A DNA stretch of 63,810 bases, the filler included, from Octopus bimaculoides (Eukaryota): NCBI RefSeq assembly GCF_001194135.2. It is 5 parts of 4 records of this genome, joined end to end, with 100 filler letters (N's around TTAATTAATTAA, not from the genome) between each part and the next. Parts side by side here need not be neighbours in the genome. Positions count along the whole stretch, not along the records: positions 1 to 16,961 come from NC_068987.1; 4 more parts are not named here. One strand, given 5' to 3'. The translations under genes were made by a program, and so were the position numbers. Shown one piece after another: positions 1 through 16,961 of this stretch. The stretch's first letter is position 1, and the number at the start of each line of letters is the position of its first letter. The notes below the pieces were generated by a model. That model was given only the letters and a program-made list of their open reading frames with translations, made no database searches and was not told the DNA's origin.

Positions 1-176
1 AATAGCTATAACGTTTTAAGCAAGAGTTCGCGCGAAAATACTACGTTAAAAAAGAACGTTAAAATAGAGAATAGAATACGAAAGCATGAATGAAATAATA
101 ATACTTAAATAAATGAATGAAAAATTTAAAATTTATATAACTAACAACATATATATATATATATACACATATATAC

Positions 177-265
177 GATGGGCTTCTTTCAGTTTCCATC
201 TACCAAATCCACTCACAAGGCTCTGGTCGGCCCAAGGCTAAAGTAGAAGACACTAGCCCAAGTTG
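177..265 (-). mobile_element. tRNA-derived SINE fragment (family A)
   Basis: Reverse complement of the segment seen in fuller copies at 19276-19630 and 25393-25775 (ctatagc..ggccgaccaaagccttgtgagtggatttggtagac.gaaactgaaagaagccc). Confidence 0.8.
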
Positions 266-567
266 CTTCTTACCATACAGCTACTCCTATATGACAAATT
301 ATTCACTCACTAGGTACTAATCAACCCAATGTCATAGTAGAAGGCTTCTTCTACAAATTTCCCTGCAATGTAATTGAGCCCAAATTCACATGGTAACAAA
401 GTGGAATTCTTCACTAGACAGCCATACATACATACATACAACTGCATACTCAATTATTTAAAGTGGTATCTATTTTCTATTAGATCAAATTATTTACATG
501 AAACCGTTTCAAAAATTATTATTTTGAAGTATATTAGTATTTTTCTTATCATTTTAGCTCTTTCCAG

Positions 568-679
568 ATATTCTTGTATTCAACCCTTATATCTTCCTTA
601 TCTGCATTTATTTTTGGTTTAATGGAAGTAATAGCTTTCTTTAATGACAAATTCGCTAATATGATTCAAGATCATGACA
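568..679 (+). CDS. Internal exon of a multi-pass membrane protein (IFLYSTLISSLSAFIFGLMEVIAFFNDKFANMIQDHD)
   Basis: Pyrimidine tract ending ttccag, 112-nt open frame, donor A|gtgagt. Ends in phase 1, matching the phase-1 start of exon 4285-4410. Confidence 0.65.
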
Positions 680-858
680 GTGAGTAGAACCTTTTTTTAA
701 TTGTCGTACTATATCTAATATGTTATTCCTTCTACATTTAATTCTATTTTATTTCTCAATTTATACTGTTATGTCAATGGATGTTTCACTACTGCAATAT
801 CACCATACTATAAATTATCTGACACATTTGAATTTATCATATTTGTTATATTTATTAT

Positions 859-1220
859 CCTCATCATCGTCATCATCATTTAACATCTGTTTTCCATGCT
901 GACATGGGTTGGATGGCTTGACAGGAGTTGGATAGCTTGACGGGAGTTGGACGGCTTGACAGGAGTTGGACGGCTTGACAGGAGTTGGACGGCTTGACAG
1001 GAGTTGGACGACTTGCCAGGAGTTGGACGACTTGCCAGGAGTTGGACAGCTTGACAGAAGTTGGATGGCTTGACATAAGTTGGATAGCTTGACGGGAGTT
1101 AGACGGCTTGACAGGAGTTGGATGGCTTGACAGGAGTTGGCAAACCAGAGGTCTTCACAAGCTCCACTGTCTGTTTTGGAATGGCTTTTATGGCTGGATA
1201 CCTTTCCTAATACCAACCAC
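859..1220 (-). mobile_element. 3' end of RTE LINE or RTE-tailed SINE containing an internal 19-bp minisatellite
   Basis: (CAT)n tail plus tttaacatctgttttccatgctgacatgggttgga and the distal cctttcctaataccaaccac match the copy at 8061-8239. Confidence 0.7.
908..1135. repeat. Minisatellite, 12 x 19 bp (GTTGGACGGCTTGACAGGA)
   Basis: Twelve contiguous units counted, with no spacers between them. Confidence 0.95.
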
Positions 1221-1389
1221 TTTATTTATTGTTATATTTATTATGGAGTAAAGATTTCTGGGTTATTACCCTTCATCAGCACATCCCCATTCGAAATATA
1301 TAGTTTTTAAAGTGACAACTAGTCACTGATCTATAAATTAGAAAATTATTATTTGTTAATCTCATAACGAGAGATATTCAACAACAGTA

Positions 1390-1707
1390 CTTTGGAGTAA
1401 AGATTATTTGCCAACATAACATGTCAGTCTTGGTTTAGGATGAATGTTGCTGTAATTTAGCCCCAGGAGACATCGTCTCCAGCTGGCTATACGACCCGAT
1501 TTGTGAAGGGAAATAACCCAGAAATCGCGATACACAGATATTGTTTTGAGCTGAGTTGGGTGCTAGATTCCCTTGCTTGAAAATATAAGGACACAGATTG
1601 TGTCATATAGCCAGCTGGAGACGATGTCTCCTGGAGCTAAATTACAGCAACATTCATCCTAAACCAGGACTGCCATGTTATGTTGGCAAATAATCTTTAC
1701 TCCAAAG
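1390..1707. mobile_element. MITE with ~116-bp terminal inverted repeats and TA target duplication (Tc1/mariner type)
   Basis: 1390-1505 is the reverse complement of 1592-1707 with few mismatches. TA at 1388-1389 and 1708-1709. Confidence 0.85.
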
Positions 1708-3057
1708 TACAAGTACTTGCAGCCCAAAACTAAAGAGAGCTAAATAGCATGACTATAATATGTTTATAATGACTATATGCCTTGGTGGAGTTTGATCAGA
1801 AGTTAAAGACAGATGAGAATTAATTCTGTAATGCAATCATTCTATTGTTCCAGTCCCAAGTTGAATTCCAACTGTTGGCCAATTTGTCCCAAAGTTCTTA
1901 TCTCGAGTGAATGTCATTTATCTCCCCCTTGATCTCTGACGTCATCTGACAAATGCCAACCAAGATGGCATGAATCAGCTTTTAAATCAGATCCCAATGC
2001 TGGATGTTCAAGAATCAAATGAAGGGCAGATTTTCAATCCTGGGATCATCCTGATTCCAAAAAGCTATAATATGTCTATGTAGAGCAAATGTAGACTGAG
2101 ATAAAGAGGTCCCAGAAGGACAGACAGAATTTTGCTTTCATTATTATAGATTTATATTATTATTATTATTATTATTATTGTTGTTGTTGTTATTATTATC
2201 ATAATATTGATCTATCAAATCACCTGTTCTAAGTACACACTGATATAAAATATCCGCTAAGTTCTGGATAAACATTATCATTTGAATATTGCTCTGATCA
2301 TGTCCAACTCATTTCTATCAGGAAAACTATGTACTAAGAATAAGAACTTAAGACACTAAGATACTAAGCTGTTGTTATTTAAGCCAATCAGCCTTGAATA
2401 AGCAGACATGTGACTGTTTGCTTGAAATAAGCAGACATAAGACATGTTTGCTTGAAAGACAGTAAATAATTTATTGAAGTGGATTTGGCTTCCACTTTGA
2501 AGAGCAAACTATGCAGAAGTTCTCTCTCAAGCCCTAGAAGTTAGAACAGTATAACTGCTTAGAATTGTTGTTATTTAGCTTTGGGTCACCTCTTGTCAAA
2601 AGGCATTTCTACTATAAACATCCTATCATTTTTCTTTCACAGGCAATGTATTCAGGATTACAAAACCTGAGGCCACATATTTGGGTAGCAAGCTTCCTAA
2701 CCACATAGCCATGCATGTGCCTCCTCATCTAATTAAATCACTTAGATGTAATCAGTAGTGGAGTTAGGTGTTTGAAAAACAGTAGCCTGAGTAAGAAAAA
2801 GGGTGGGAAGTTCAGGGAGCTATTACCTCTGCTGCCAGCAAGAAGATTTTGTAAGTGAGGGACTGACGTGTGATGGCTGTGCACAATATGTGATGTCATA
2901 TGGGGGGGGGAGAGACAAAACATAGATATTGAATGTGGGGGATGCGTTAAGGATGGATAGAAATAAAGCAATGAAGTAAACATGTTCTGATGGTTGTGTG
3001 TAATGCTGTAATGTTAGCGTGCCTGAATGCCAGAGCACAAATACACTGAGAGAATGG

Positions 3058-3072
3058 ACGCGCGCGCGCGCG

Positions 3073-3103
<31 letters not shown>
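3058..3103. repeat. (CG)n-(CA)n microsatellite
   Basis: Direct reading: acgcgcgcgcgcgcgcacgcacacaca... Confidence 0.9.
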
Positions 3104-3554
3104 CATTTAAGATGAATCAGTTGTGTGCAAAAGGGAAGACTGCACTGGTACAGAAATTTGATGTGCATGAAGGATGGCAGATAGGTAAATAAATGTCAAG
3201 TTATCCAGATGTAAGGAATCTGCAGAAGAAGAAAATTCAAGGAAGACATGAGAAGAATTAATGAAAGCTGCTCACAAGCGATAGAAGCTTAGGCAGTTGA
3301 TGACAAACAGTAGATGGGCAATTCATCGATAGACAGTTGGCCGACAGGACAGTTGACCAACTGGACAATTTGCCAAAAGGGCAATTTGTCAACAATTTTT
3401 AAAAACAAAGTAAAAATGATGGAAAAATTTTATTAGACTTACAAATAAAAATAATTTATTTATAAAAAGATATTATGTACAATAGGTTGGCATATGAAAA
3501 AAGCACAAGAAGTTTTGTTTGTCTTACATATAGAAATAAAGATACCACATACAA

Positions 3555-3743
3555 TTATGGTGGATGTACGTGTTCAGAAGGGGTTGTGCTAATTTCATCA
3601 TCAATCGTTGTCAGTCTAGCACTGCGCAGTTTACGATTTGCACATCTCCAATAAGTCTTTTCTTTTTTGGTTCTATCAATAATATAGGCGTACCCTTTGT
3701 ATAGAAGCTTTCTGCCTCCTTGTTCTATTTTGATGAACTCCAT
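3555..3743 (-). mobile_element. FLYWCH zinc-finger ORF (62 aa), probable Mutator/MULE remnant
   Basis: MEFIKIEQGGRKLLYKGYAYIIDRTKKEKTYWRCANRKLRSARLTTIDDEISTTPSEHVHPP matches the FLYWCH pattern (F..L..GY.Y..YWRC..H.H). Flanked by opposite-orientation ggacaatt-type motifs at ~3325-3392 and ~3770-3795. Confidence 0.75.
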
Positions 3744-4284
3744 GATAGACACTTCCGCATGTTGACTTATTGTCCAATCAGCGAATTGTCTGCACACAAT
3801 GACAAACAACCACATAGCAAATAGCAAAATTCTGTAACTAGAGAAGACAGATTCTACCACATGATGATGATTGATGGATGATAATGACGAAAACAATGAT
3901 GATGGTGGTTAGGGGCAGTGACTGCAGCAGCAGTTGCAGTGGTGGTGGTGGTGACATTTAAGCCAACTTGGAAGTCTGTGTAGTTATTTGACATGTTGGG
4001 AATAAAAGCAGCTAAGTCTCCCACAAAATATAATGTATGTTTTCTAGAAAAATAAATAAATAAATAACACATTGAAATGACAATATTAGATGGACATGCC
4101 TAGAACAGCTTTGAGCGTAGGTCTGTTTGATCAGAGCTGTTCTGAGGCTAAATGAAAATATTAAAATAAAAGAAATTCATACCTGACAATTCTAACAATG
4201 AGAAATAAATCTCAGTAAAAGCAAAATGTTCCCTTAACAATTTTTAAAGGTCTTTACTTTGTTTTTATTATTTCTCCCTTTTAG

Positions 4285-4410
4285 ACTTGCGAGTTTTTGG
4301 CTTGGTGGTTCCTTCTGCCTACTGGCTATTTACCATAATTTTGGCAGTCATTTTAAATCTCATTTTTGCTGCTGAAATGGTATTAATGATTTCATACCGC
4401 AAATATTTGG
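4285..4410 (+). CDS. Internal exon of the same membrane protein (xLRVFGLVVPSAYWLFTIILAVILNLIFAAEMVLMISYRKYL)
   Basis: Acceptor tttctcccttttag, donor G|gtaagt, 126 nt, phase 1-1. Only one of the three frames is open and it is strongly hydrophobic. Confidence 0.75.
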
Positions 4411-5044
4411 GTAAGTTTCTTTTTACTGAAAAAAAATCAAAGCAAAATATTTTCTACAGAAGCTACTTTTGTTCTGTATTTTCCAGCATACAAATTGATG
4501 TAGTGTATAGTGTAAACATGTAGTGCAAATATTCAAATATCACTATTTTCCTAAATCCTGTTGCATTTTTCATGGAATTTTTGGTCCTCTTAAGTCATCT
4601 TGGTGATTGAGTTGATCTATTTTTCTTTTACTGTAAATTTTTGTCTAAAAGTTTGACTTGTATGCTGGAAAATATGGTAAGTCATACAACATAGTGCATT
4701 GTATGCTGTACTCACTGTAAACAAACACACAACATTCTTCTTATACTTGTGTTTCTTTAGTCACTAGTTTTATCACAATTTACAGAAAATTTCTGACAAG
4801 AATTGTGATGAGAACACTCATACTGTGATCCCTCTTTTGTGACTGTGAAGAGTCCATATAAGTCATGTTCAACTCAAATATACCCTTGGTTATTTTATGA
4901 TCAAAAGTATTTTAGATCTCTAAATGATAAGCTAGTAATATTGATATCAATCACATCGATCTTGTTGTCAAGTGTGATTTGTGGTATCCATTTACATCTA
5001 GGTGTTAAAAACGTATAGCAAGACACTTTATGCTGTGGATGCTA

Positions 5045-5200
5045 TAGGTGCAGGCTTAGCTGTGTTGTTAAGAAGCTTGCTTCCCAATCACATTGTCCTG
5101 GGTTCGGTCTCACTGCATGGCACCTTGGGCAAGTGCCTTAGGCTGACCAAAGCCTTGTGAGTTGATTTGGTAGACAGAAACTGAACAGAAGCTCATCGTA
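5045..5200 (+). mobile_element. tRNA-derived SINE (family A), partial
   Basis: gcttagctgtgttgttaagaagcttgcttcccaatcac..gggttcggtctcactgcatggcaccttgggcaagtg, followed by (TA)n. Confidence 0.8.
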
Positions 5201-6427
5201 TATATACATATATATATATATATATATANNNNNNNNNNNNNNNNNNNNNNNNNNNNNNNNNNNNNNNNNNNNNNNNNNNNNNNNNNNNNNNNNNNNNNNN
5301 NNNNNNNNNNNNNNNNNNNNNNNNNNNNNNNNNNNNNNNNNNNNNNNNNNNNNNNNNNNNNNNNNNNNNNNNNNNNNNNNNNNNNNNNNNNNNNNNNNNN
5401 NNNNNNNNNNNNNNNNNNNNNNNNNNNNNNNNNNNNNNNNNNNNNNNNNNNNNNNNNNNNNNNNNNNNNNNNNNNNNNNNNNNNNNNNNNNNNNNNNNNN
5501 NNNNNNNNNNNNNNNNNNNNNNNNNNNNNNNNNNNNNNNNNNNNNNNNNNNNNNNNNNNNNNNNNNNNNNNNNNNNNNNNNNNNNNNNNNNNNNNNNNNN
5601 NNNNNNNNNNNNNNNNNNNNNNNNNNNNNNNNNNNNNNNNNNNNNNNNNNNNNNNNNNNNNNNNNNNNNNNNNNNNNNNNNNNNNNNNNNNNNNNNNNNN
5701 NNNNNNNNNNNNNNNNNNNNNNNNNNNNNNNNNNNNNNNNNNNNNNNNNNNNNNNNNNNNNNNNNNNNNNNNNNNNNNNNNNNNNNNNNNNNNNNNNNNN
5801 NNNNNNNNNNNNNNNNNNNNNNNNNNNNNNNNNNNNNNNNNNNNNNNNNNNNNNNNNNNNNNNNNNNNNNNNNNNNNNNNNNNNNNNNNNNNNNNNNNNN
5901 NNNNNNNNNNNNNNNNNNNNNNNNNNNNNNNNNNNNNNNNNNNNNNNNNNNNNNNNNNNNNNNNNNNNNNNNNNNNNNNNNNNNNNNNNNNNNNNNNNNN
6001 NNNNNNNNNNNNNNNNNNNNNNNNNNNNNNNNNNNNNNNNNNNNNNNNNNNNNNNNNNNNNNNNNNNNNNNNNNNNNNNNNNNNNNNNNNNNNNNNNNNN
6101 NNNNNNNNNNNNNNNNNNNNNNNNNNNNNCAAGACAAAAAAATAAAAGTGATGTTTCACTAAAAAAAAAAAAGAAAAGTGATGTTTCACTAAAAAAAAGA
6201 AAAAACAACAAAAAGGAATAGTAATTATATTATAGTTGCAATATATCCCCTGTCCCCCTTTTTCATCTCGCATAATATAACCCATTGTTTATATAGAACC
6301 TTACAACAACTTGTATTCATTACGTTGAAGTACAATTCTTTTTTGTTTGTGTACATAATTTTCCGCTAAAGTTGTTCGTTCTTAAATAAAATTTCCTTTT
6401 CAAAGTTTTGTTTATATGACTTTAGCT

Positions 6428-6610
6428 AAGTGTATCAGTGTGGTAAGAAGTTTGCTTCCCAACCACACTGTTTTGGGTTCGGTCTCACAGCATTCCACCC
6501 TGGACAAGTGTCTTCTGCTATTGCACCAAACCGAACAAAGCATTGAGTGATAAACAGAAACTGAAGGAAGCCGTCGTGTATGCGTGTGTGTTTGTGTGTG
6601 TGATTGTATG
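6428..6610 (+). mobile_element. tRNA-derived SINE (family A), partial
   Basis: gtgtggtaagaagtttgcttcccaaccac..gggttcggtctc..gacaagtgtcttctgctat..gaaactgaaggaagccgtcg. Confidence 0.75.
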
Positions 6611-6859
6611 TGCGAGTGTGATATAGATAACTGGCGAGAAAACTGAGAGACCAGTACTCTTCGACGGAATCTTGCAAATGACCGCGTTATTAAAGTAAAA
6701 CATATAACACAAAAAAATAAGGAAACATATATTTCTCAAAAGGTTTCTGGATAAATTAAATTGTTAAACTGTTAAATGAAACATTTGGCATGAGAAGCAG
6801 AAACAAAAAGTCGGATAGCGTTAAAGATTTATTTCATTTTTTATTAATTTAAATAATCG

Positions 6860-7045
6860 TTAGTACGCCACAGGAAATGATTAGCGGCATTTTGTCCGTC
6901 TTTACGTTCTGCCGAGGTCGACTTTGCCTTTCATCCTTTCGGGGTCGATAAAATAAGTACCAGTTAAGCAGGGTGGGGGTGTCAATGTAATCGACTTACC
7001 TCCTCCCACCGAAACTGCAGGCCTTGTGCCAAAATTTGAAACTAA
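6860..7045 (+). mobile_element. SINE family B
   Basis: ttagcggcattttgtccgtctttacgttct..gccgaggtcgactttgcctttcatcctttcggggtcgataaaataagtaccag, shared with copies at 27507, 31480 and 55375. Confidence 0.8.
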
Positions 7046-7266
7046 TGTTTCTCTTATGTGAAACGATATCGTTTGTAAGCAGAAGGGGAAATATTAATAT
7101 GACTATTCATGTTTCGACTCTCTACTTAGAATTCTGTGCCGAAGAAATTTTACGAAGTTCGTGCTGAGAAGCAGAAGATTGTTGCAGATTATTTCGCAAT
7201 TTTTCCAAGATATATATCTTCGTTATTAGCGATCGAAGCAGGTTTGGTTCAGAATAGTATTGTGTA

Positions 7267-9610
7267 TAGGGGAAGGGGACAAAATTGGTAACTTAGGCAA
7301 ATTAATGTAATTTCTTATTTATTATTTTTCCCTACCTGTTTGAAACCATTACATTGCAAGTATTGAATCATTATTTTGTACTGTTGTATCATCATTGGGA
7401 ATAAAAATCAGTCACCATAGTTGTTGTTGTTGAAGTTGAGAGAGTTTGAAACATAGTCAGGAGACAGGTACTTTATTTATTTTTTTTTTTTTCAAGAAAA
7501 TTTTCCCTCAACTTTGATCCAATTGTAATTGAGGTTGCTAATAAAATATCTGCATATTTTCTTATGTTTAACAATCTATATTCTTTTCTCTGCTGGATTC
7601 CAAGTCAATTTTTTCCAACACTAATGTCTAATTTGATAATTTCCAGTTTTCAAAAAACAACGTCCAAAATGGGACAAAATGAGAAATCACTAATTTCAAT
7701 ATCTTGTATTTAACTGCATGGTGCATAAATATATTGAGGAGAGAGCCACTCCAGCAGATCATGAAGAAGTTATATAGGATATATCTTATGTTGAATTTTG
7801 GAATTTAGTCGAGTTGTGTTAATTTCATATCGTGTGCTATTTTTTCATGATCCAATTTCATTTGACCTAGATATTTGAAATTTTTGTTGCTTTTCTAATG
7901 TTTGTGATGTCTAGGATTTTTTTTTCAAATGCAATTCTGGAGAATGGAAGCAACAAATTTTTCTTATTTTGTCTTATTCATTTTGCCCCAGCTAAATTTG
8001 TCCTTTATATGCTCAAAGAGAATGGAAATAGTTTTCTGAAAATCTCATAGTATTTTTAACCCATCATCATCATCATTGTTTAACGTCCGCTTTCCACGCC
8101 AGCATGGGTTGGACGATTTGACTGAGGACCGGTGAAACCGGATGGCAACACCAGGCTCCAGTCCGACTTGGCAGAGTTTCTACAGCTGGATGCCCTTCCT
8201 AACGCCAACCACTCAGAGAGTGTAGTGGGTGCTTTTACGNNNNNNNNNNNNNNNNNNNNNNNNNNNNNNNNNNNNNNNNNNNNNNNNNNNNNNNNNNNNN
8301 NNNNNNNNNNNNNNNNNNNNNNNNNNNNNNNNNNNNNNNNNNNNNNNNNNNNNNNNNNNNNNNNNNNNNNNNNNNNNNNNNNNNNNNNNNNNNNNNNNNN
8401 NNNNNNNNNNNNNNNNNNNNNNNNNNNNNNNNNNNNNNNNNNNNNNNNNNNNNNNNNNNNNNNNNNNNNNNNNNNNNNNNNNNNNNNNNNNNNNNNNNNN
8501 NNNNNNNNNNNNNNNNNNNNNNNNNNNNNNNNNNNNNNNNNNNNNNNNNNNNNNNNNNNNNNNNNNNNNNNNNNNNNNNNNNNNNNNNNNNNNNNNNNNN
8601 NNNNNNNNNNNNNNNNNNNNNNNNNNNNNNNNNNNNNNNNNNNNNNNNNNNNNNNNNNNNNNNNNNNNNNNNNNNNNNNNNNNNNNNNNNNNNNNNNNNN
8701 NNNNNNNNNNNNNNNNNNNNNNNNNNNNNNNNNNNNNNNNNNNNNNNNNNNNNNNNNNNNNNNNNNNNNNNNNNNNNNNNNNNNNNNNNNNNNNNNNNNN
8801 NNNNNNNNNNNNNNNNNNNNNNNNNNNNNNNNNNNNNNNNNNNNNNNNNNNNNNNNNNNNNNNNNNNNNNNNNNNNNNNNNNNNNNNNNNNNNNNNNNNN
8901 NNNNNNNNNNNNNNNNNNNNNNNNNNNNNNNNNNNNNNNNNNNNNNNNNNNNNNNNNNNNNNNNNNNNNNNNNNNNNNNNNNNNNNNNNNNNNNNNNNNN
9001 NNNNNNNNNNNNNNNNNNNNNNNNNNNAGCAGGGGTAAGAGCTCTCTAAACTTTGCCCAGGCTATTCTTATTCTAGCAGCTACACTTTCAGCGCACCCAC
9101 CCCCACTACTAACTTGGTCGCCCAGATAGCGGAAGCTATCGACTACCTCTAGTTTTTCACCCTGGAATGAGATAGAAGTTGTTTCCTGTTTGTTTACAGT
9201 CTTTATTGCACCTGAACATCTGCCACAAACAAAAACTAACTTGCTAGTTAACCTGCCTTTGATGTTGCTGCACCTCTTATGTGTCCATAGCTTGCACCGG
9301 GTACATCTTATAGAGTTACTACCTACTCCTTTTCTACATACTGAGCAGGGCCATCTACCTGAAGGGGTTTGTGTTTTATCTACCTTCCTACTTAAAACAC
9401 AAACCCCTTCAGGTAGATGGCCCCATATATGCCCATAAAAAAATGAAGTCTTAGGAATTGGTTATATAAAATGCAACCAGGGGTATATAAGGGTTTTAAT
9501 GCATTTGCTTAGTTAATGTAGTTTTTGTAAGGTAGTGAACATTTGTAAAAATTTTTTTTTCTCAAAGTCAAAAATACAGTAAATGTTACTCATTGTGCTC
9601 CCCACCCACA
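7267..9610. mobile_element. Degenerate pogo/Tc1-like DNA transposon, copy 1, interrupted by an RTE insertion
   Basis: 7320-8040 aligns with 13510-14310 and 9490-9605 aligns with 14330-14437. Ends taggggaaggggacaaaattggtaa and ttactcattgtgctccccaccc are imperfect inverted repeats. Confidence 0.6.
8061..9436 (-). mobile_element. 5'-truncated RTE LINE spanning an assembly gap
   Basis: (CAT)n tail and RTE 3' end at 8061-8239. 9028-9436 is the reverse complement of the C-terminal part of the RTE at 40180-40560. Confidence 0.8.
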
Positions 9611-10660
9611 CACACACACACACACACCACATTACTCATTGTGCTCCCCACCCACACACACACCACATTACTTAATGTGGATATACTGTAGAAAACCATG
9701 AAACTACAGACTTCATAATCAGAAAGCTTCTTGTATAGACATATAGTGCTAAAAAGCACAGAAATGCTTCAGTTGCTGTGGAAAAACATTCAGCAGCAAA
9801 GTATGAATTGCTAAATCTGGATTTCTGTGTCTTTGCACATCATCAGTAGCAAGTATCCAATATCAATGGCATGCTTAGAAAAATTTTACCTCTGCTGATA
9901 TAGAAAAGACAGTGACTAACAAATCTGTAGGGACACAACTGGTGGGCTAGACAAAATCCACTCTGCAATGTAGCTCCATTTAACAGTATGTTCTCCAAGT
10001 AGAAGATGCCAGAGGAAAATTTTTGAAATCATTAATTTTAATTGCTTAATCAGTGATCTGTTACCAGATATTTGTTGATTTTGACAGTCTATGCAATGGC
10101 AAAATATCTTTGACTCATGATTACAGAATTCAATTAAACTTTGAAGAAAAGAAAATACTTCCGTTAAGCTTTTTTGTTTTCCAAACTACAAAAACTACAA
10201 CAGCAGTAAAAGTTGTTTAGTATATAAACCTTCAGGAAGTTGAAGCAGCTCATTTGCTCAACATGTTACTCCTGAATTGGGTTATGCTTTTCTCTCAGAT
10301 TTCTGAAGTAATAAAAATCATCTCTGATATCATTTATATATTCTCTGAGCTCACACATAAGTAATCTTACATGTTAACTCATTTTTGAAAGTTGTGACTT
10401 TAGCTTATGAGAGTATGATTAAAAATGAAAGTAGAATAATGTAGGAGAGATAATTGGACCTTGGGGGCCATCACTGTTGTTAGAGCGAGGAACAACCTAA
10501 AAGGAACATTTCATTTTAGGTGAAAATAAGACAATCATATGATATTTATAATTGAAGAGTTTTCATATATAAACCACAACAGCATTCCTACCTAAAGCCA
10601 AGGTTCTATATACTGAGTTAGGCTTAACAGTGAAGTACAAATAAAAATATAACAATTTTA

Positions 10661-10947
10661 TTAAACTTTATACAAGTGTTTGATACAATAAATTAGGGCA
10701 GCAAATTTATCATTATTCTTAAAGTGAGATCGCCACATCATTTCTGTTAATAAAGACTGAAATAAAAATGTCCTTCGCTTTCGTTGACAATGTTTTTTTA
10801 CTCTTAGCCACATCCTGTCTATGTTTTTCATGTGAATTTCTATATCTTCTGGCTCATTGTAATCTACATATTCATGAGTATATATACCTTGTTGGATCTG
10901 GTCAATTTGAAGATATTCAGCCCATATATCAGATACAATATGGGTAC
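10661..10947 (-). CDS. Exon 2 of Merlin/IS1595-like transposase-derived gene
   Basis: Acceptor gttctttttcttatag|GT ACC. Open frame GTHIVSDIWAEYLQIDQIQQGIYTHEYVDYNEPEDIEIHMKNIDRMWLRVKKHCQRKRRTFLFQSLLTEMMWRSHFKNNDKFAALIYCIKHLYKV*, with AATAAA overlapping the stop. Continues the PGT..SD.W..Y motif of ISXO2-like transposases. Not in the ORF track because there is no upstream ATG in frame. Confidence 0.85.
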
Positions 10948-11799
10948 CTATAAGAAAAAGAACTACAATGAATCTTTATTATTTATGAGAAACGAGAGAT
11001 TGCAACATTCATACATTTACCGAAAGTACAAAAAATGAAAACTATTCTGATAAAGAATCAAATCTTGGTCATGAACTTTCGTTGTAGAATACTTATCACT
11101 ACACTGTGATGATTCCACTAAAAATAATTGAAAATATGAAGTCATGTTAGCAGTAGCCTTTGTTGCAGAATGGCAAGGCTAAGTGAAGTGAGAATCAATG
11201 TCAATGTTGTCAGATGATTCAATTCTTCAAAATAGCCAATTCCACTTGAGTCATATCATAGTAATTAGATTTCAATTTAGCCATTTTTCTCATTCTAGTT
11301 TCCTGCGAAACTGGTTTTATGAGCTTATGGCTTGGAAAGGACTCTTAATCCTGATTGATTGATTGATTGATAGATGTATGAATGGCTAGATAGATACATG
11401 CATGCATAGATAGACAGACAGAGATATAATCATTACAATAACTTATTGTCAAATATGTATGTCTGTAACATAGGTTCTGGTTTGGTCCGGAACTTCCCCC
11501 CTCTCTCTCCCATCTTCTGTATGTATGTGCATGTGTGTATGTATGTACACAGACAGACACACACACACACATATCTCTCAACACTGTTATTAAGGGCATT
11601 AAGTTACCACTTTCAAAAACAGAATGTTTCTTCTTCTAAAAGCACATTTGTTACAAAATAGAAAGAAAATGAATCACCATTGTTTAAACTTCTCTTAAAA
11701 TAACTTATGAATAAATATTCATTTTTCTCTATTAAACTTCAATAAGTTACTTTCTCTACAGTATGAAATACCATGTACTTATCTCGCATTACTCTTGAG

Positions 11800-12800
11800 C
11801 AACTATGCCATTCGGGGTCAATCTTGAGCAACTGCAACACAACCAAAGCATTCTATAGGGGATTAGTGGAGGGGAGGTACGACGACGATCTCGGAGCGAA
11901 CCTGGGTGTCGACAAGGACCTGCCTGTTCAAGACGACTTTCAGGCCGGGGCCTATGGACAACTTCTAGAGATCCCTGGCCTGGCAGTGCTATCGAGAAGG
12001 GCTACCCATTTGTGATAAGCTCTACAGGCATGGCTCGAGAAACACGGGGCCGACCTACCCAAGATGCGGTCAGTGCAACGAAACCATTCTGCATGCACTC
12101 ATACAGTGTCCAACCATTTCCGACCTATGGGCCTATGTCGAACGACTGCTATCACATGTGGGATGAGTCAGTTTATCAACTGAGTCTATCATGAATATTG
12201 TTGCGCCTCCTTCCTTGAAACTGGAAGGAAGAGCCATTTTCATCGTACTTGTGGCTATGGCGAAAGAATGTGTATGGTGGACATGTCTGAAAGGTCTAGA
12301 GACAAACACTTTCCTCTCTGGTGAATCTCTCATCAACTTCTTCCAGTATCACTTGAAGAGGAAGGTGAGAGTAGAGAGGGAAGTTTTGTCTAGTGAATGT
12401 TTCAAAAAAAGATGGGTGAAAAAGGATGGCACATGTGAATGATGGAGCCACCTTGAGCATAATCCGATGAACCAGAAAAAGAAAGGAAAAAAAGAGTCAC
12501 TTACTGTAATGTGTTTTTTGCCTGACATTATTGCCCAAGGTTACCGTGGTCTTTTCTGTAGGCTTTTCTTTCCATGGATAAACCTAAACTGTTTCCCATT
12601 TTACACTATGACATTTCTGTGATACACAATTCCTACTGATTGGCTTCCTCACCCATTTTTTTTTTCCACGATCCCTTTTGATCAAAATTCTACCCTCCCA
12701 TTTTTTTTTTTCCTTTCCAAAAAGAAAAGCTCTGCTTTGTATTTTGTCCCCTCTGTGTTCAGCCCTGTGTGGCCAATGAAGAAATCTATCTATCTATCTT
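11800..12800 (+). mobile_element. 3' fragment of L1/Tx1-clade LINE (zf-RVT zinc knuckle plus 3' UTR), frameshifted
   Basis: Across frames it reads LAWQCYREGLPICDKLYRHG..PRCGQCNETILHALIQCPTISDLWAYVE and then NIVAPPSL..IVLVAMAKECVWW..FFQYHLKRKVRVER. Lies inside the Merlin gene intron. Confidence 0.75.
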
Positions 12801-13477
12801 TCTTTCTTTCTATCACTGTTTTTACTTTTCTCTCACCAAATACACAAGAAACCTAAACAATTCACAGAGACTATCCACTTCAGTTTCTTCCATTCAATCA
12901 TTTCAGAAAATACTTGAATGATTATTTTCTTACAACTACTTTAAAAAAGAATTTTATTATTGAATAGTCTGTCACGAATGAAGTAATATATACAAGAGGT
13001 ATCCCAATAATGAAAATGTTAAATTCACTAAAAATATTTTATACACAGACATTGTCAAAATATTTTATACACAGACATTGTCAAAATGTTTTGTCCACAG
13101 TAGGATTTTCTACAAACTCTTTTCAGAAAGTATAGATTTTGATTATTTCGGTATTTGATGTGAACACTCTTTTGCAAGGGTTGGAGAGGAGTTTCAAATA
13201 ATTTACATGCCTTGATATTGTTTCCTGTGAAAATGGGTAATTTTCAATGAAATTTTTTCCGATTTTGTTGATTACAATTATATAGGAATTTAATGTGCAA
13301 AAAACAAAAAAATGGTCAGCACACACACACACATCACGTATATACAAAATAAAAGTCAAAATTATGTGATGCATGTGTGCGCTGCAATCACTTTTTGTTA
13401 TCTTGTTGCATTAAATTCCAATATGATCATAATCTATACTATCTGGCAGTTATTAATAGAATATTGACAACAACAAA

Positions 13478-14440
13478 AAAAAAAGGGGGGGCAAAATGGG
13501 TAATTTCTAGTTTTTTTATTTTCTCTCCAGTTATTTGGAATTGTTACATTGCAAGTATTGCATCGTCATTTTGTACTGTTGCATCATCTTTGGGAGTAAA
13601 GACTGGTCACCATAACTGTTGTTGTTATTGAAGTTGCGAGAGTCTGAAACATAGTCAGGTGACAGGACTTTTATTTCTAGAAATATTTCCTCAAATTTGA
13701 CCCAATTGTAATTGAGGCTGCTAATAAAATATCTGAATAATTTTTGCTGTTTAACAATCTATATTCTTTTCTCTGTTGGATTCCAAGTCAATTTTTTTTC
13801 CACACCAATGTCTAATCTGATAATTTTCCAGTTTGAAAAAAATGATGTCGAAAGTGTTGCTAAAATGAGCAATGGTGGTGCCCCAGCATGGCCACAGCAC
13901 ATGAGCTGAAACTAGATAAAATGAAAAAAAAAAAAAAAATGACTAATTTCAATAATTTCTTTCTTTAACTGCATCATGGAGCATAAATATATCAGGAAGA
14001 AAGCCACTCCAGCAGATTGTGAAGAAACAATAAAGAATATTTTATATTGAGTTTTTTTTTTTATTATTTGAGTCATTAATTTCATCTCATGTTATTTTTT
14101 CTTAAACCTCTTTCATTTAATCTAGGTATTTTAGATTTATGTTGCATTTCTGAAGTCTAGAGATGAATATCAATGTGTATAAGTCTGTTTTCATATGCTA
14201 TTCTGGAGAATTAATGCAGCATATTGACCTTATCTAGGTTCACTCATTTTGCCCTAGCTAAATTTGTATTTTATATGTTCAGAGACCAGCGATAATTTTC
14301 TGAAATAGTGGTCAGTTCATGTTATAATGTTTTTAATGCATTTACAGAAGGTCTTTTGCTTAGTTGATATAGTTTTTGTTGGGCAGTGAAAATTAATAAA
14401 AAATATTTTTTAACAGTAAAAACTCCTTATTGTGCCCCAC
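13478..14440. mobile_element. Degenerate pogo/Tc1-like DNA transposon, copy 2, with a SINE-A tail inserted at ~13868-13925
   Basis: Colinear with 7267-9610. The insert ggtgccccagcatggccacagc..ctgaaactagataaaatga is absent from copy 1 and is bracketed by taaaatga repeats. Confidence 0.6.
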
Positions 14441-15259
14441 CCCTACCCGTTTCTCTGAAAGCATTGAAGAAACGAATCCGGGGGCGGGGGCACATGTGTA
14501 GGTATGTTGGGAAGGGCAATGACAGTATCCCAAGCCCGATTTTATTTCCTCATAACTTTCTTGATAATTCACATTTTTCTTTTAAATGCTGCGATACATT
14601 TCTAAGGGAGTTGATGATGACTATGATCATGACATTCTTTTTAATTATCTATTCTTTAACTCAGTAAGAATTTCATAACTTTTAAACAATTCAATAACAT
14701 TTCCAGGGTCATTGCACAACATCAAAGAAATCTATGATGTTATTCTGATAAGGTACTATTCATTATCAAAATGAAATCTGAAATGCTCTTGTTGAATAGT
14801 TAAAAGAGCATGAATTTCTGGTTAATATATAGTTTAACTCCCGATCACCAAAACAGAAAAAAAAAAAGAAACAGGTTAATAGATTTTAAAAAAAAAGTGT
14901 AGAAGACGAATATAAAAACAAAAATTGCGCAAAGGGAAAATTCACAAGATCCGATTTTTCCCTCACAACTTTCAGGTAAACGGATATATATTGATGAAAT
15001 TTTATAGAAATACCGTTCAAATGACAATTTCTTTTATTTCCGAATAAAAGTCCTTTTTTTTTTTTTAATTCTGTCAACATATTCGTTACCTACACCTTCG
15101 AAAATTAAGTCTCTGCAAAATTTCGTTAAATAATATACAGTATTGAGAAATCTATGAAGAAACAAAGCCTACAGCAGAATGAACAACACACTATTGAAAC
15201 GCCAAAAATTCAAATGAGATCGTAATGACAGAGACAAGGAACACAAATATTGATAAAAT

Positions 15260-15320
15260 GTTACCATGGAAACGTATTCAGAATTTAAACAAAAAGCCGA
15301 AGCGGAAGTAAAACGTCAGA
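15260..15320. promoter_or_regulatory. RFX X-box (15260-15273), ETS site (15302-15309) and CRE-like half site
   Basis: GTTACCATGGAAAC fits the 14-bp X-box consensus GYTNYYATRRNAAC. GCGGAAGT and AACGTCA lie within 50 bp in a locally CpG-containing patch. Confidence 0.55.
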
Positions 15321-15404
15321 CGGGAAAATATCGTACTCGAGGTTTAATAATCTGAGGAGGAGCACCGATAAGAGAAGACTACAAACTTTATTTATTCACC
15401 ATAC

Positions 15405-16113
15405 CTGGTAAAATCCATCGGATAATTGCAGCTTCGAAAGCTTCTTTATTTTGATACTCAATAGGCACCAGAAAACATTTATCAGTTCCGCGTTCAATTC
15501 CACCAAAAATCCAAAATTCTTTCTTGTGTTTTTTCTCATTACGCTTAGATTTAACACATTTGGTGACATCTATTTCAACGACTTTTGGTTCACCTGTCTG
15601 TAGATCGAACCCACCAATCTCGGGTGGGTCGTCACCTAATTCAGTCGGGTGGTCTTCCAGGAACCGTTCCAGTAGTTCTCGGATGAGGCGAAACATATCA
15701 GTCGTTGAATTTTTATTGACGTTTGTCTCGTGTGTCATTTCAGTATGTTGGTAATCTCTTGACCACATATACATAAGCCATATGAATGTTGTGAGCGAGA
15801 GGTGACTTTTCTCAAAGAAGGATCCTTTGCGGATTGATCGTGAGAAGTTATGCTGGGGACATCGCCATCGTATTCCATCAATACTTCTCTTGATGACGTT
15901 AATTGTACAAGGGTTCCCACAAACAGAACATATAACAGAATTGCTTATAAGTTTATATTTCGCCAACCATGTAATTGCTATATCATTTGTGGAGATTTGT
16001 TTGAAGAGGTCATAAAATGTCCATGACTCTTGCCTAATTTTTTCGTCATCAACAATGTCTGCGCATATAGTCTTGGGGTTTGAAGGTCTTCCGCGAGGCA
16101 TTTTGTAAGACAT
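15405..16113 (-). CDS. Exon 1 of Merlin/IS1595-like transposase-derived gene
   Basis: Open 236 codons with zinc-ribbon CSVCG..WRCPQH, SIRKGSFFEKSHLSL and VEIDVTK..WIFGGIERGTDKCFLVP..IIRWILPG. Donor CCA G|gtatgg, phase 1, matches exon 2. Likely start is ATG 16113 or the caaaATG at 16101. Confidence 0.9.
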
Positions 16114-16744
16114 TCAAAAATTAAAATAAATTTAAAGCAGAACTTTATATGAAACAAATACCCAGAAAGTGATAGTTCCGTATAAATTCTACTGCATTAT
16201 GAAGAAAGCAAATGTTATAATAAAATGTAAATAAATTTTAAAATTAGTATTGGAATCTACTTAAAGAGTCCTTGCTTTTATGGGTTGATAAAAATTATTA
16301 GCAATTTCTTGCAATTTACTTCCTGTTATGAGTTCCCTACAGAAAGTTGATATAATGTCAGTTCCTTTAACTTCAGTTGAGTCTTAATTGTGGAATAACT
16401 AATAACTCTGGGCATTAATTTTCTGTAATTAAGTATTAACAATTAAATTTTTAAATATTAGAATATCAATTCTAAGATTCCGTTTTACTTAGTAACGGTG
16501 GAGTTGCTACTCAAGCTTGTAGCGAATATATAACAACAATATAACAAGGGAGATAACTCGTCATAAAGGGAAGTAAGTCACACCGATATATATGTACACA
16601 CACATGACTTATTGCTTACGTCTACAAAATCCACTCGAGTCTATGGTCTGCCCGGAACTATAGTGGAAGATACTTGCAGAAGGTGCAGCTCAGTGGACCA
16701 AACAAAAAAACCACAAGGTTGGGAAGCAAGCTTCTTATCACACG

Positions 16745-16961
16745 TGTAACTCAGTCACGACTCATGGCTCGCCACTTCATCTTTCGTGGATATCCCCTTA
16801 CCACTATCCACACCGTCCTTGCCAGAGCACGTTCCATGGAGCGTGCCGCTGCTCTCTCTCCCCGCGGTTACCCGTCTCGGCAAGTCTCCCGCCCCCTCCC
16901 CCCAACAACCTTTAAAAAAATTTTTTTTCGTCACAAACCCCACTTTTGGGCTACGGGGAAT
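16745..16961 (+). mobile_element. Penelope-like element fragment
   Basis: SRLMARHFIFRGYPLTTIHTVLARARSMERAAALSP resembles the post-RT 'HF..RGYP..I..A..RA...R..L' segment of Penelope elements. Confidence 0.6.

Follow-up and report, generated by a model that had tools for sequence, protein, structure and literature searches.

Gene E (LOC106879049) of Octopus bimaculoides, situated at positions 10661 to 16113 on the minus strand of the stretch of DNA analysed here, is in our judgement probably a host gene that belongs to a family seen so far only in Octopus and derived from a Merlin (IS1595-like) transposase, and its product is likely to be a DNA-binding factor. The stretch, referred to as the window, is 63,810 nucleotides long, filler included, and is composed of five parts of the genome joined end to end; the part with gene E (positions 1 to 16,961, from NC_068987.1) is located at about 56.31 Mb on chromosome CM046607.1. 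An intact gene that lacks terminal inverted repeats (TIRs), occupies a fixed syntenic locus and evolves under purifying selection is what domestication of a transposase predicts, and gene E has these features in O. bimaculoides. Co-option by the host had been suggested from an inspection of the bare sequence (hereafter the sequence-only reading), and the intactness, locus and selection of the gene support that part of the suggestion; the accompanying role in DNA binding is one that we infer.

The gene consists of two exons, with coding parts at 16113..15405 and 10947..10661 (-) that join into a frame of 996 nucleotides (331 codons and a TAA stop) without any internal stop or frameshift. Exon 1 (15405..16113) starts with the ATG at 16113 and contains codons 1-236 plus the first base of Gly237; read without splicing, it forms part of an open reading frame (ORF) of 241 amino acids at 15388..16113 (-) that ends in RWILPGMVNK. 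The donor site reads CCAG before and GTATGG after the splice point, with the GT at 15404-15403 following base 15405, and the acceptor reads ttctttttcttatAG, with the AG at 10949-10948 preceded by a polypyrimidine tract and GT as the first bases of exon 2. Between these sites lies a GT..AG intron of 4,457 nucleotides (10948..15404, -) in phase 1, which splits the Gly codon between ILPG and THIVSD. Exon 2 (10661..10947) runs from the rest of Gly237 to Val331, with the TAA at 10663-10661, and a putative poly(A) signal, AATAAA at 10662..10657 (-), overlaps the stop codon and is found at the same place in alignments of the O. sinensis copy of gene E and of its paralog A in both species. The model was verified by exact translation, and the joined product is identical over 100% of its length to XP_014783957.1, the protein of LOC106879049, which is a computational prediction at NCBI labelled 'uncharacterized protein'. 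The coordinates, splice sites and length of about 331 amino acids that the sequence-only reading had given for an intact two-exon gene of Merlin/IS1595 origin were thereby reproduced in full. Three Logan contigs (P0010, P0021 and P0022) were considered as spliced transcripts and rejected, since they run past the donor site as ILPGMV and are either unspliced or genomic.

The homology to Merlin/IS1595 transposases, which had been recognized from short motifs, was recovered in Pfam above the gathering score. Residues 188-309 matched profile positions 27-151 of 153 in the Pfam family PF12762 (DDE_Tnp_IS1595), collinearly across the exon junction, with a score of 30.4 bits (gathering score 27, E = 4.6e-7), and a precomputed match to PF12762 was present in all family members. 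The NCBIfam IS1595 model NF033547 aligned to residues 102-309 over profile positions 1-211 of 215, with a score of 42.4 bits that is below its cut-off of 75. Judged from these alignments, the gene E protein is a divergent eukaryotic relative and not a bacterial IS1595 protein.

Cluster look-ups and a neighbour-joining tree placed the relatives of gene E in eight orthogroups (A, B, C, D1, D2, D3, E and F), which form a monophyletic family in the tree. For the seven orthogroups other than E, members that are at least 90% identical were found in O. bimaculoides and in O. sinensis and/or O. vulgaris, so that all duplications must predate the split of O. bimaculoides from these species, and all seven are represented by annotated full-length proteins in every species where they were seen. 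The counterpart of E elsewhere is a pseudogene in O. sinensis. Along the O. bimaculoides chromosome, a gene for a DHHC-type palmitoyltransferase is followed by E (331 amino acids), A (LOC106879047, 327 amino acids) and C (LOC106879048, 333 amino acids), with A on the same strand as E and C on the opposite strand. The D1-D3 genes have consecutive locus and accession numbers on one chromosome and probably constitute a second tandem cluster; B and F are located on other chromosomes. All nine genes that were checked by exact translation in two species, gene E and eight others, have two exons with a GT..AG intron that splits the same Gly codon of ILPG, the family introns ranging from 2.5 to 9.3 kb in length. 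The relative in Hydra (P0013) is a single uninterrupted ORF without an intron, which makes the intron a feature of the octopus family. A HMMER scan of 1.84 billion representative sequences yielded a single 50%-identity cluster near the query (70% identical), with the next matches at 38%, and a profile search of 5.8 billion clusters recovered members only from three Octopus species and one further contig. The next relatives outside the family are no more than 42% identical.

Two other family members have gene models of unusual structure. An extra cassette exon, encoding AGC(L/H)TRCQPS(D/A)VSKEGDISHGQ, is predicted in the intron of paralog A in both species (P0023 and P0009; LOC106879047 and LOC115214512), and its inclusion shifts the frame of exon 2 and leads to an early end; a conserved 'poison' exon is one possible explanation. 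Family member B is followed, about 7 kb downstream, by a C2H2 zinc-finger gene (L007, 22965-25882). In the O. vulgaris model P0018, residues 1-279 of B are joined to C2H2 fingers, and this joint may come from read-through in the annotation or be a candidate host-transposase fusion.

Gene E shows no sign of recent mobility. No TIRs were detected around it, in agreement with the sequence-only reading: an inverted-repeat scan of the gene and 10 kb on each side (25 kb) and a comparison of the 4 kb upstream with the 4 kb downstream both returned only dinucleotide-repeat matches, none of them longer than 14 nucleotides. In O. sinensis, the locus L005 has the order A, E copy and DHHC gene, collinear with the O. 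bimaculoides locus L001 and with 85-94% identity in noncoding segments, and the locus of group B is likewise syntenic between the two species. A syntenic single-copy ortholog had been sought as a mark of domestication; the fixed position was found, but the gene is one of eight orthogroups and not single-copy. Nucleotide similarity between A and E reaches about 75 bp beyond the ATG on the upstream side and about 230 bp beyond the stop codon; in the intron it fades about 40 bp past the donor and resumes about 150 bp before exon 2. The aligned 5' flank (16114..16188, -; blastn match of 80% identity to the tandem paralog A) is probably a 5' untranslated region (UTR) or a core promoter carried over by tandem duplication, and the aligned 3' flank (10427..10660, -; blastn match of 76.6% identity) is probably a 3' UTR. 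These blastn matches, which include exon sequence, pair positions 9926-10753 of L001 with 1608-768 of L002 and positions 15010-15687 of L001 with 2916-3598 of L001, where L001 and L002 are the loci of the O. bimaculoides cluster. For paralogs other than A, the similarity to E is confined to the coding sequence, and the introns are unalignable except for dispersed repeats. Two further loci, L003 and L004, were examined as syntenic counterparts of the O. bimaculoides cluster and rejected: only exons and dispersed repeats matched, because these loci belong to other orthogroups (F and D3).

These observations also bear on the idea that gene E is the transposase gene, with an intron, of an autonomous or recently active Merlin transposon. 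Such an element would account for the DDE_Tnp_IS1595 homology, the intact ORF and the acidic triad of the protein, and 191 Merlin-like protein hits were counted in O. bimaculoides in a eukaryote-wide Merlin survey, in which the octopus family was not singled out (PMC8101967). It is contradicted by the lack of TIRs within 4 kb on either side, by the same position and neighbours in a second species, by a 4.5-kb intron that holds fragments of other repeats, and by a dN/dS ratio far below 1 between positional orthologs, unlike that of dead or passive copies. Nor are there near-identical dispersed copies, the closest paralog having a protein identity of 79% and a dS of 0.51. We regard an active transposon as extremely improbable and as the least likely of the alternatives considered.

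To quantify selection, synonymous (dS) and nonsynonymous (dN) substitution frequencies between positional orthologs were estimated by the Nei-Gojobori method, with bootstrap ranges for their ratio. The dN/dS ratio was 0.14 for group A (dN 0.010, dS 0.074; bootstrap range 0.04-0.36), 0.065 for group B (dN 0.010, dS 0.149; 0.02-0.15) and 0.17 for group E (dN 0.027, dS 0.157; 0.08-0.32), and all pairs of paralogs yielded ratios of 0.11-0.25 with dS values of at least 0.5. The ratio for E is well below 1, as the sequence-only reading would have it for a co-opted gene. Using the transition/transversion ratio of 1.17 in the noncoding flanks, 75% of the non-stop substitutions are expected to be nonsynonymous under neutrality, and binomial tests were made against this expectation. 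In the E pair, 21 of the 49 substitutions were nonsynonymous (P = 1.5e-6). With A as the outgroup, about 14 synonymous and 9 nonsynonymous substitutions (9/23, P = 2.7e-4) were assigned to the O. bimaculoides branch of E, and 10 and 3 (3/13, P = 1.2e-4) when a suspected conversion tract was left out. The simulated chance that the ORF of E would have stayed open at neutral divergence since the species split was about 0.02 or less, with indels not yet counted. Judged by its substitutions, gene E has thus been under purifying selection on the O. bimaculoides branch. With a dS of 0.51, against 0.07-0.16 for the species split, the duplication that separated A from E is several-fold older than the split, which implies that E remained intact for a long time beforehand.

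A number of observations weigh against a constrained host gene and were considered together. The most direct is the state of the O. sinensis ortholog. The sequence-only reading had taken disrupted orthologs to speak against co-option, and the O. sinensis copy of E (L005, 24816-25523 and 30171-30457, on chromosome CM016865.1) is disrupted by three disabling lesions: a 1-bp deletion in codon 14 and CGA to TGA changes in codons 82 and 292. Gene E is therefore dispensable in at least one lineage, and selection on it is not universal; in O. bimaculoides, too, the selection may be weak or have been relaxed recently. Furthermore, the exons are 94.4-95.1% identical between the species, hardly more than the alignable flanks (92.7-95.1%), so that selection is argued from the type of substitution, through the proportion of synonymous and nonsynonymous ones, and not from overall conservation. 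The dN/dS ratios were obtained by a single method. The assignment of changes to branches with A as the outgroup is disturbed by an apparent A-to-E conversion in O. sinensis over codons 272-309 (window ~10730-10843), where E and A of O. sinensis share species-specific bases at codons 288 and 306; the changes in these codons that appear specific to O. bimaculoides more likely reflect patchy gene conversion in O. sinensis. Finally, an assembly gap that begins 848 bp upstream of the ATG could hide a TIR.

Several of these points would also be accounted for if, within a domesticated family, E were a redundant product of tandem duplication that is now decaying into a pseudogene and whose frame is still open in O. 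bimaculoides merely as a leftover. Besides the lesions in O. sinensis and the exons that are barely more conserved than the flanks, no orthogroup but E lacks an intact partner of at least 90% identity in another species, and the dN of the E orthologs exceeds that of A or B by a factor of about 2.7. However, the O. bimaculoides branch, with 14 synonymous and 9 nonsynonymous changes (10 and 3 outside the tract), is far from the neutral expectation, and in that species the ORF is intact, as are the start codon, the two splice sites and the AATAAA, with a low simulated chance of an open frame under neutrality. The age of the A/E duplication relative to the split likewise indicates long survival of an intact gene beforehand. 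A decaying duplicate is for these reasons considered unlikely. We instead retain the interpretation of E as a domesticated host gene in O. bimaculoides and read the O. sinensis pseudogene as one redundant member that was lost in one lineage. Its loss there does not imply a lack of constraint in O. bimaculoides, because the O. bimaculoides branch is constrained and the A/E duplication is far older than the split, and it indicates that the family gains and loses members.

The pseudogene has no gene annotation of its own, and its exon 2 is annotated only as an alternative last exon of LOC115214512. The isoforms X2 and X4 of that gene are spliced to this exon and stop at the premature TGA, with the C-terminal end KIHCQ (P0005 and P0025). 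The O. vulgaris model P0029 continues into the coding sequence of RPS10.

According to the structural model, exon 1 encodes N-terminal helices, a zinc ribbon, a helical region that resembles a DNA-binding domain and strands b1-b3 of a ribonuclease H (RNase H)-like core, and exon 2 encodes strands b4-b5 and C-terminal helices. The putative zinc ribbon has the motif C62-x2-C65 ... C85-x2-H88 (codons 62-88, 15850..15930, -), placed by alignment and model. The cysteines C62, C65 and C85 do not vary, either within the family or among distant Merlin relatives. At the position of the fourth ligand, A, B, D and E have H, canonical relatives have C, and groups C and F have D. No Pfam zinc finger was matched significantly by the protein, the best candidate being Zn_ribbon_recom (E = 0.35). 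The AlphaFold2 model, inferred from an alignment of 11 sequences, had a mean predicted local distance difference test score (pLDDT) of 80.3 and a predicted template modelling score (pTM) of 0.79, with pLDDT values of 85-92 over residues 20-150. Its layout comprises the N-terminal helices, beta-hairpins around the CCCH motif (70-73, 81-84 and 91-93), the helical region (107-154) and a core of the order b1-b2-b3-helix-b4-b5-helix. The best Foldseek matches in PDB were the N-terminal and catalytic core domains of retroviral integrases (E of about 1e-4, probability 1.0); a sequence-profile search of solved PDB structures gave nothing meaningful (best E = 0.18). The model thus suggests that the full transposase architecture has been retained, from the N-terminal helices and the CCCH zinc ribbon through the helical region to the RNase H-like core. 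The sequence-only reading had confined conservation to the zinc ribbon and the DNA-binding half, which we did not find, since the RNase H-like core is conserved as strongly as the N-terminal half.

The motifs VEIDV, SDIWAEY, YVDYN and HMKNID are present exactly as they had been read from the DNA. From the alignment and the model, the acidic triad is predicted to consist of D182 in VEIDV on strand b1 (15568..15570, -), D243 in SDIW at the end of b4 (10928..10930, -) and D280 in HMKNIDRMW in the helix 277-292 (10817..10819, -), with K287 at +7 from the third. In canonical Merlin relatives (P0011, P0012 and the Hydra protein), these segments read VEIDES, SD(G/M)WAAY and (HTQ/TAN)(N/H)(I/V)E, with E as the third triad residue. 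In the octopus family, the E after the first D is replaced by V, I or M and the third E by D, four residues are deleted where the aligned canonical relatives have IHNE, VHQH or NHTY, and seven residues (TELGDDP) are inserted. The catalytic context is thus altered, as had been claimed, but the triad itself and the K at +7 are kept in gene E, and in all species seen the orthogroups A, B, D1, D3 and E retain D182, D243, D280 and K287. In the remaining groups a triad residue has been lost, to G at the first position in C, to G at the second in F and to N or S at the third in D2, and each loss is identical in every species where the group was seen. The force that keeps these three groups conserved does not need DNA cleavage, since each has lost a triad residue; it is from these paralogs, and not from gene E, that the strongest case for dispensable catalysis comes, and the D-D-D retained in E does not support a loss of activity.

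The retained triad allows for the alternative that gene E encodes a host nuclease or recombinase that uses D-D-D, with C, F and D2 as non-catalytic partners, by analogy with PiggyMac of Paramecium, a domesticated transposase that reportedly has inactive PiggyMac-like partners. Such a function would explain why the triad and K287 are maintained in five orthogroups, why the three acids are predicted to sit on b1, at the end of b4 and in a helix as an RNase H-like active site requires, why the whole core and not merely the N-terminal half is strongly conserved, and why orthogroups with and without the triad coexist, all of them conserved. It fits less well with the changed context of the active site (the lost E after the first D, the four-residue deletion and the third E replaced by D), and the proposed activity comes without known target sequences or TIR-like partner sites. 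The two systems are alike in being transposase-derived multigene families that contain members with and without the triad, all conserved, but PiggyMac is of piggyBac and not Merlin origin, the likeness is limited to the architecture of the family, and nothing in the octopus data points to programmed DNA elimination. A host nuclease is therefore rated as rather improbable, although some residual nuclease activity of the gene E product through its D-D-D triad is possible. A multi-subunit Merlin-derived DNA-processing system, in which A, B, D1, D3 and E would cut or join at specific sites and C, F and D2 would be the non-catalytic partners, is a long shot; if real, it would carry out a programmed DNA transaction or a sequence-specific silencing of transposons and be the first Merlin-derived machinery of such kind in an animal.

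For the interpretation favoured here, a domesticated DNA-binding factor, the history of the family may have begun with a single ancestral copy of a Merlin transposase that lost its ends. This copy would then have gained the phase-1 intron in ILPG, and the intron-bearing copy would have multiplied, partly by tandem duplication. The product of gene E would most likely be a sequence-specific DNA-binding factor, either a regulator or a repressor that acts on Merlin-like ends, probably together with its paralogs, and the members of the family would work through DNA binding and protein-protein contacts.

In comparison with Merlin/IS1595 transposases, gene E is similar in length to the canonical relatives P0011, P0012 and P0013 (about 320-330 amino acids) and in the predicted RNase H-like fold with acids on b1, after b4 and in a helix, the K at +7 and a CxxC...CxxC/H motif upstream; it differs in the lack of detected TIRs, the fixed syntenic position and the spliceosomal intron, and in the octopus-specific changes of the active site, namely D as the third residue, the missing E beside the first D, the four deleted residues and the inserted TELGDDP. 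Merlin copies in Stentor and Perkinsela have preserved ORFs without TIRs or target site duplications and share neighbours, and domestication has been proposed for them (PMC8101967). The octopus family resembles these candidates in the preservation of a Merlin ORF without TIRs and in common neighbours between species. The protist cases were argued from ORF preservation and synteny, whereas the octopus family belongs to an animal, comprises eight orthogroups with a conserved intron, and adds dN/dS ratios of positional orthologs and a conserved loss of the triad in three groups. Lineage-specific expansions of DNA-binding genes derived from transposons have been described in Octopus for pogo-derived CENPB-like, THAP and HTH-Psq genes, and the same survey of transposon-derived factors, which included Octopus, contains no occurrence of Merlin/IS1595 (PMC10027918). 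Like these expansions, the Merlin family is a lineage-specific and partly tandem set of transposase-derived genes without close homologs in neighbouring lineages; unlike them, it retains the whole transposase and not the DNA-binding domain alone.

The intron of gene E contains remnants of other elements. In one region of it that was scanned against Pfam, a decayed fragment that resembles the 3' end of the second ORF of a non-long terminal repeat (non-LTR) retrotransposon is located at approximately 11970..12442 (+), with a weak match to zf-RVT (PF13966; E = 0.001, 20.1 bits, cut-off 27.5). It fits a retrotransposon remnant that would be a passenger outside the function of the gene, and copies of its repeat are found at other sites of L001 and in the L003 intron. 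Around all family loci, a dispersed repeat about 400 bp long, with copies that are 70-91% identical, is very abundant (for example L002 17299-17716, 18540-18940 and 19001-19406, and at least a dozen sites in L004) and is probably a SINE-like (short interspersed nuclear element) element; a short piece of it is found in the gene E intron (L001 12181-12243, window ~13871-13933). No tRNA-like gene was detected in the intron by ARAGORN, and the pogo-like and SINE insertions described by the sequence-only reading stand as candidates. Beside gene E, the 3' part of the DHHC-type palmitoyltransferase gene fills the window from position 1 to about 7693 (+); it is convergent with gene E and is the neighbour that is conserved in O. 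sinensis. A full-model match to the Rfam CPEB3 ribozyme, which is of the hepatitis delta virus (HDV)-like type, is located antisense within the range of this gene (4772-4844, -), with a score of 36.2 bits (gathering score 35) and E values of 1.4e-6 in the window and 3.4e-8 in a segment of 401 nucleotides; the match may represent a ribozyme carried at the 5' end of a retrotransposon, or it may be a borderline false hit. Two runs of N (5229-6129 and 8240-9027) are assembly gaps and explain the dips to low guanine-cytosine content in the composition profile.

Host genes that arose from transposases have repeatedly supplied new regulators and recombinases, with RAG1, CENP-B, PGBD5, SETMAR and PiggyMac as examples. 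While a domesticated transposase is thus well known as a kind, the octopus Merlin family is, as far as we have searched, undescribed: no paper on octopus genes derived from Merlin was found in the literature searched, where domestication of Merlin has been suggested only for two protist lineages (PMC8101967), and all genes of the family are labelled only 'uncharacterized protein' in NCBI. The family contains natural contrasts, between members with a complete and a deficient triad and between the intact gene E of O. bimaculoides and its dead counterpart in O. sinensis. The role of a co-opted Merlin transposase in a cephalopod, and the importance of catalysis for that role, could therefore be studied in this compact set of genes.

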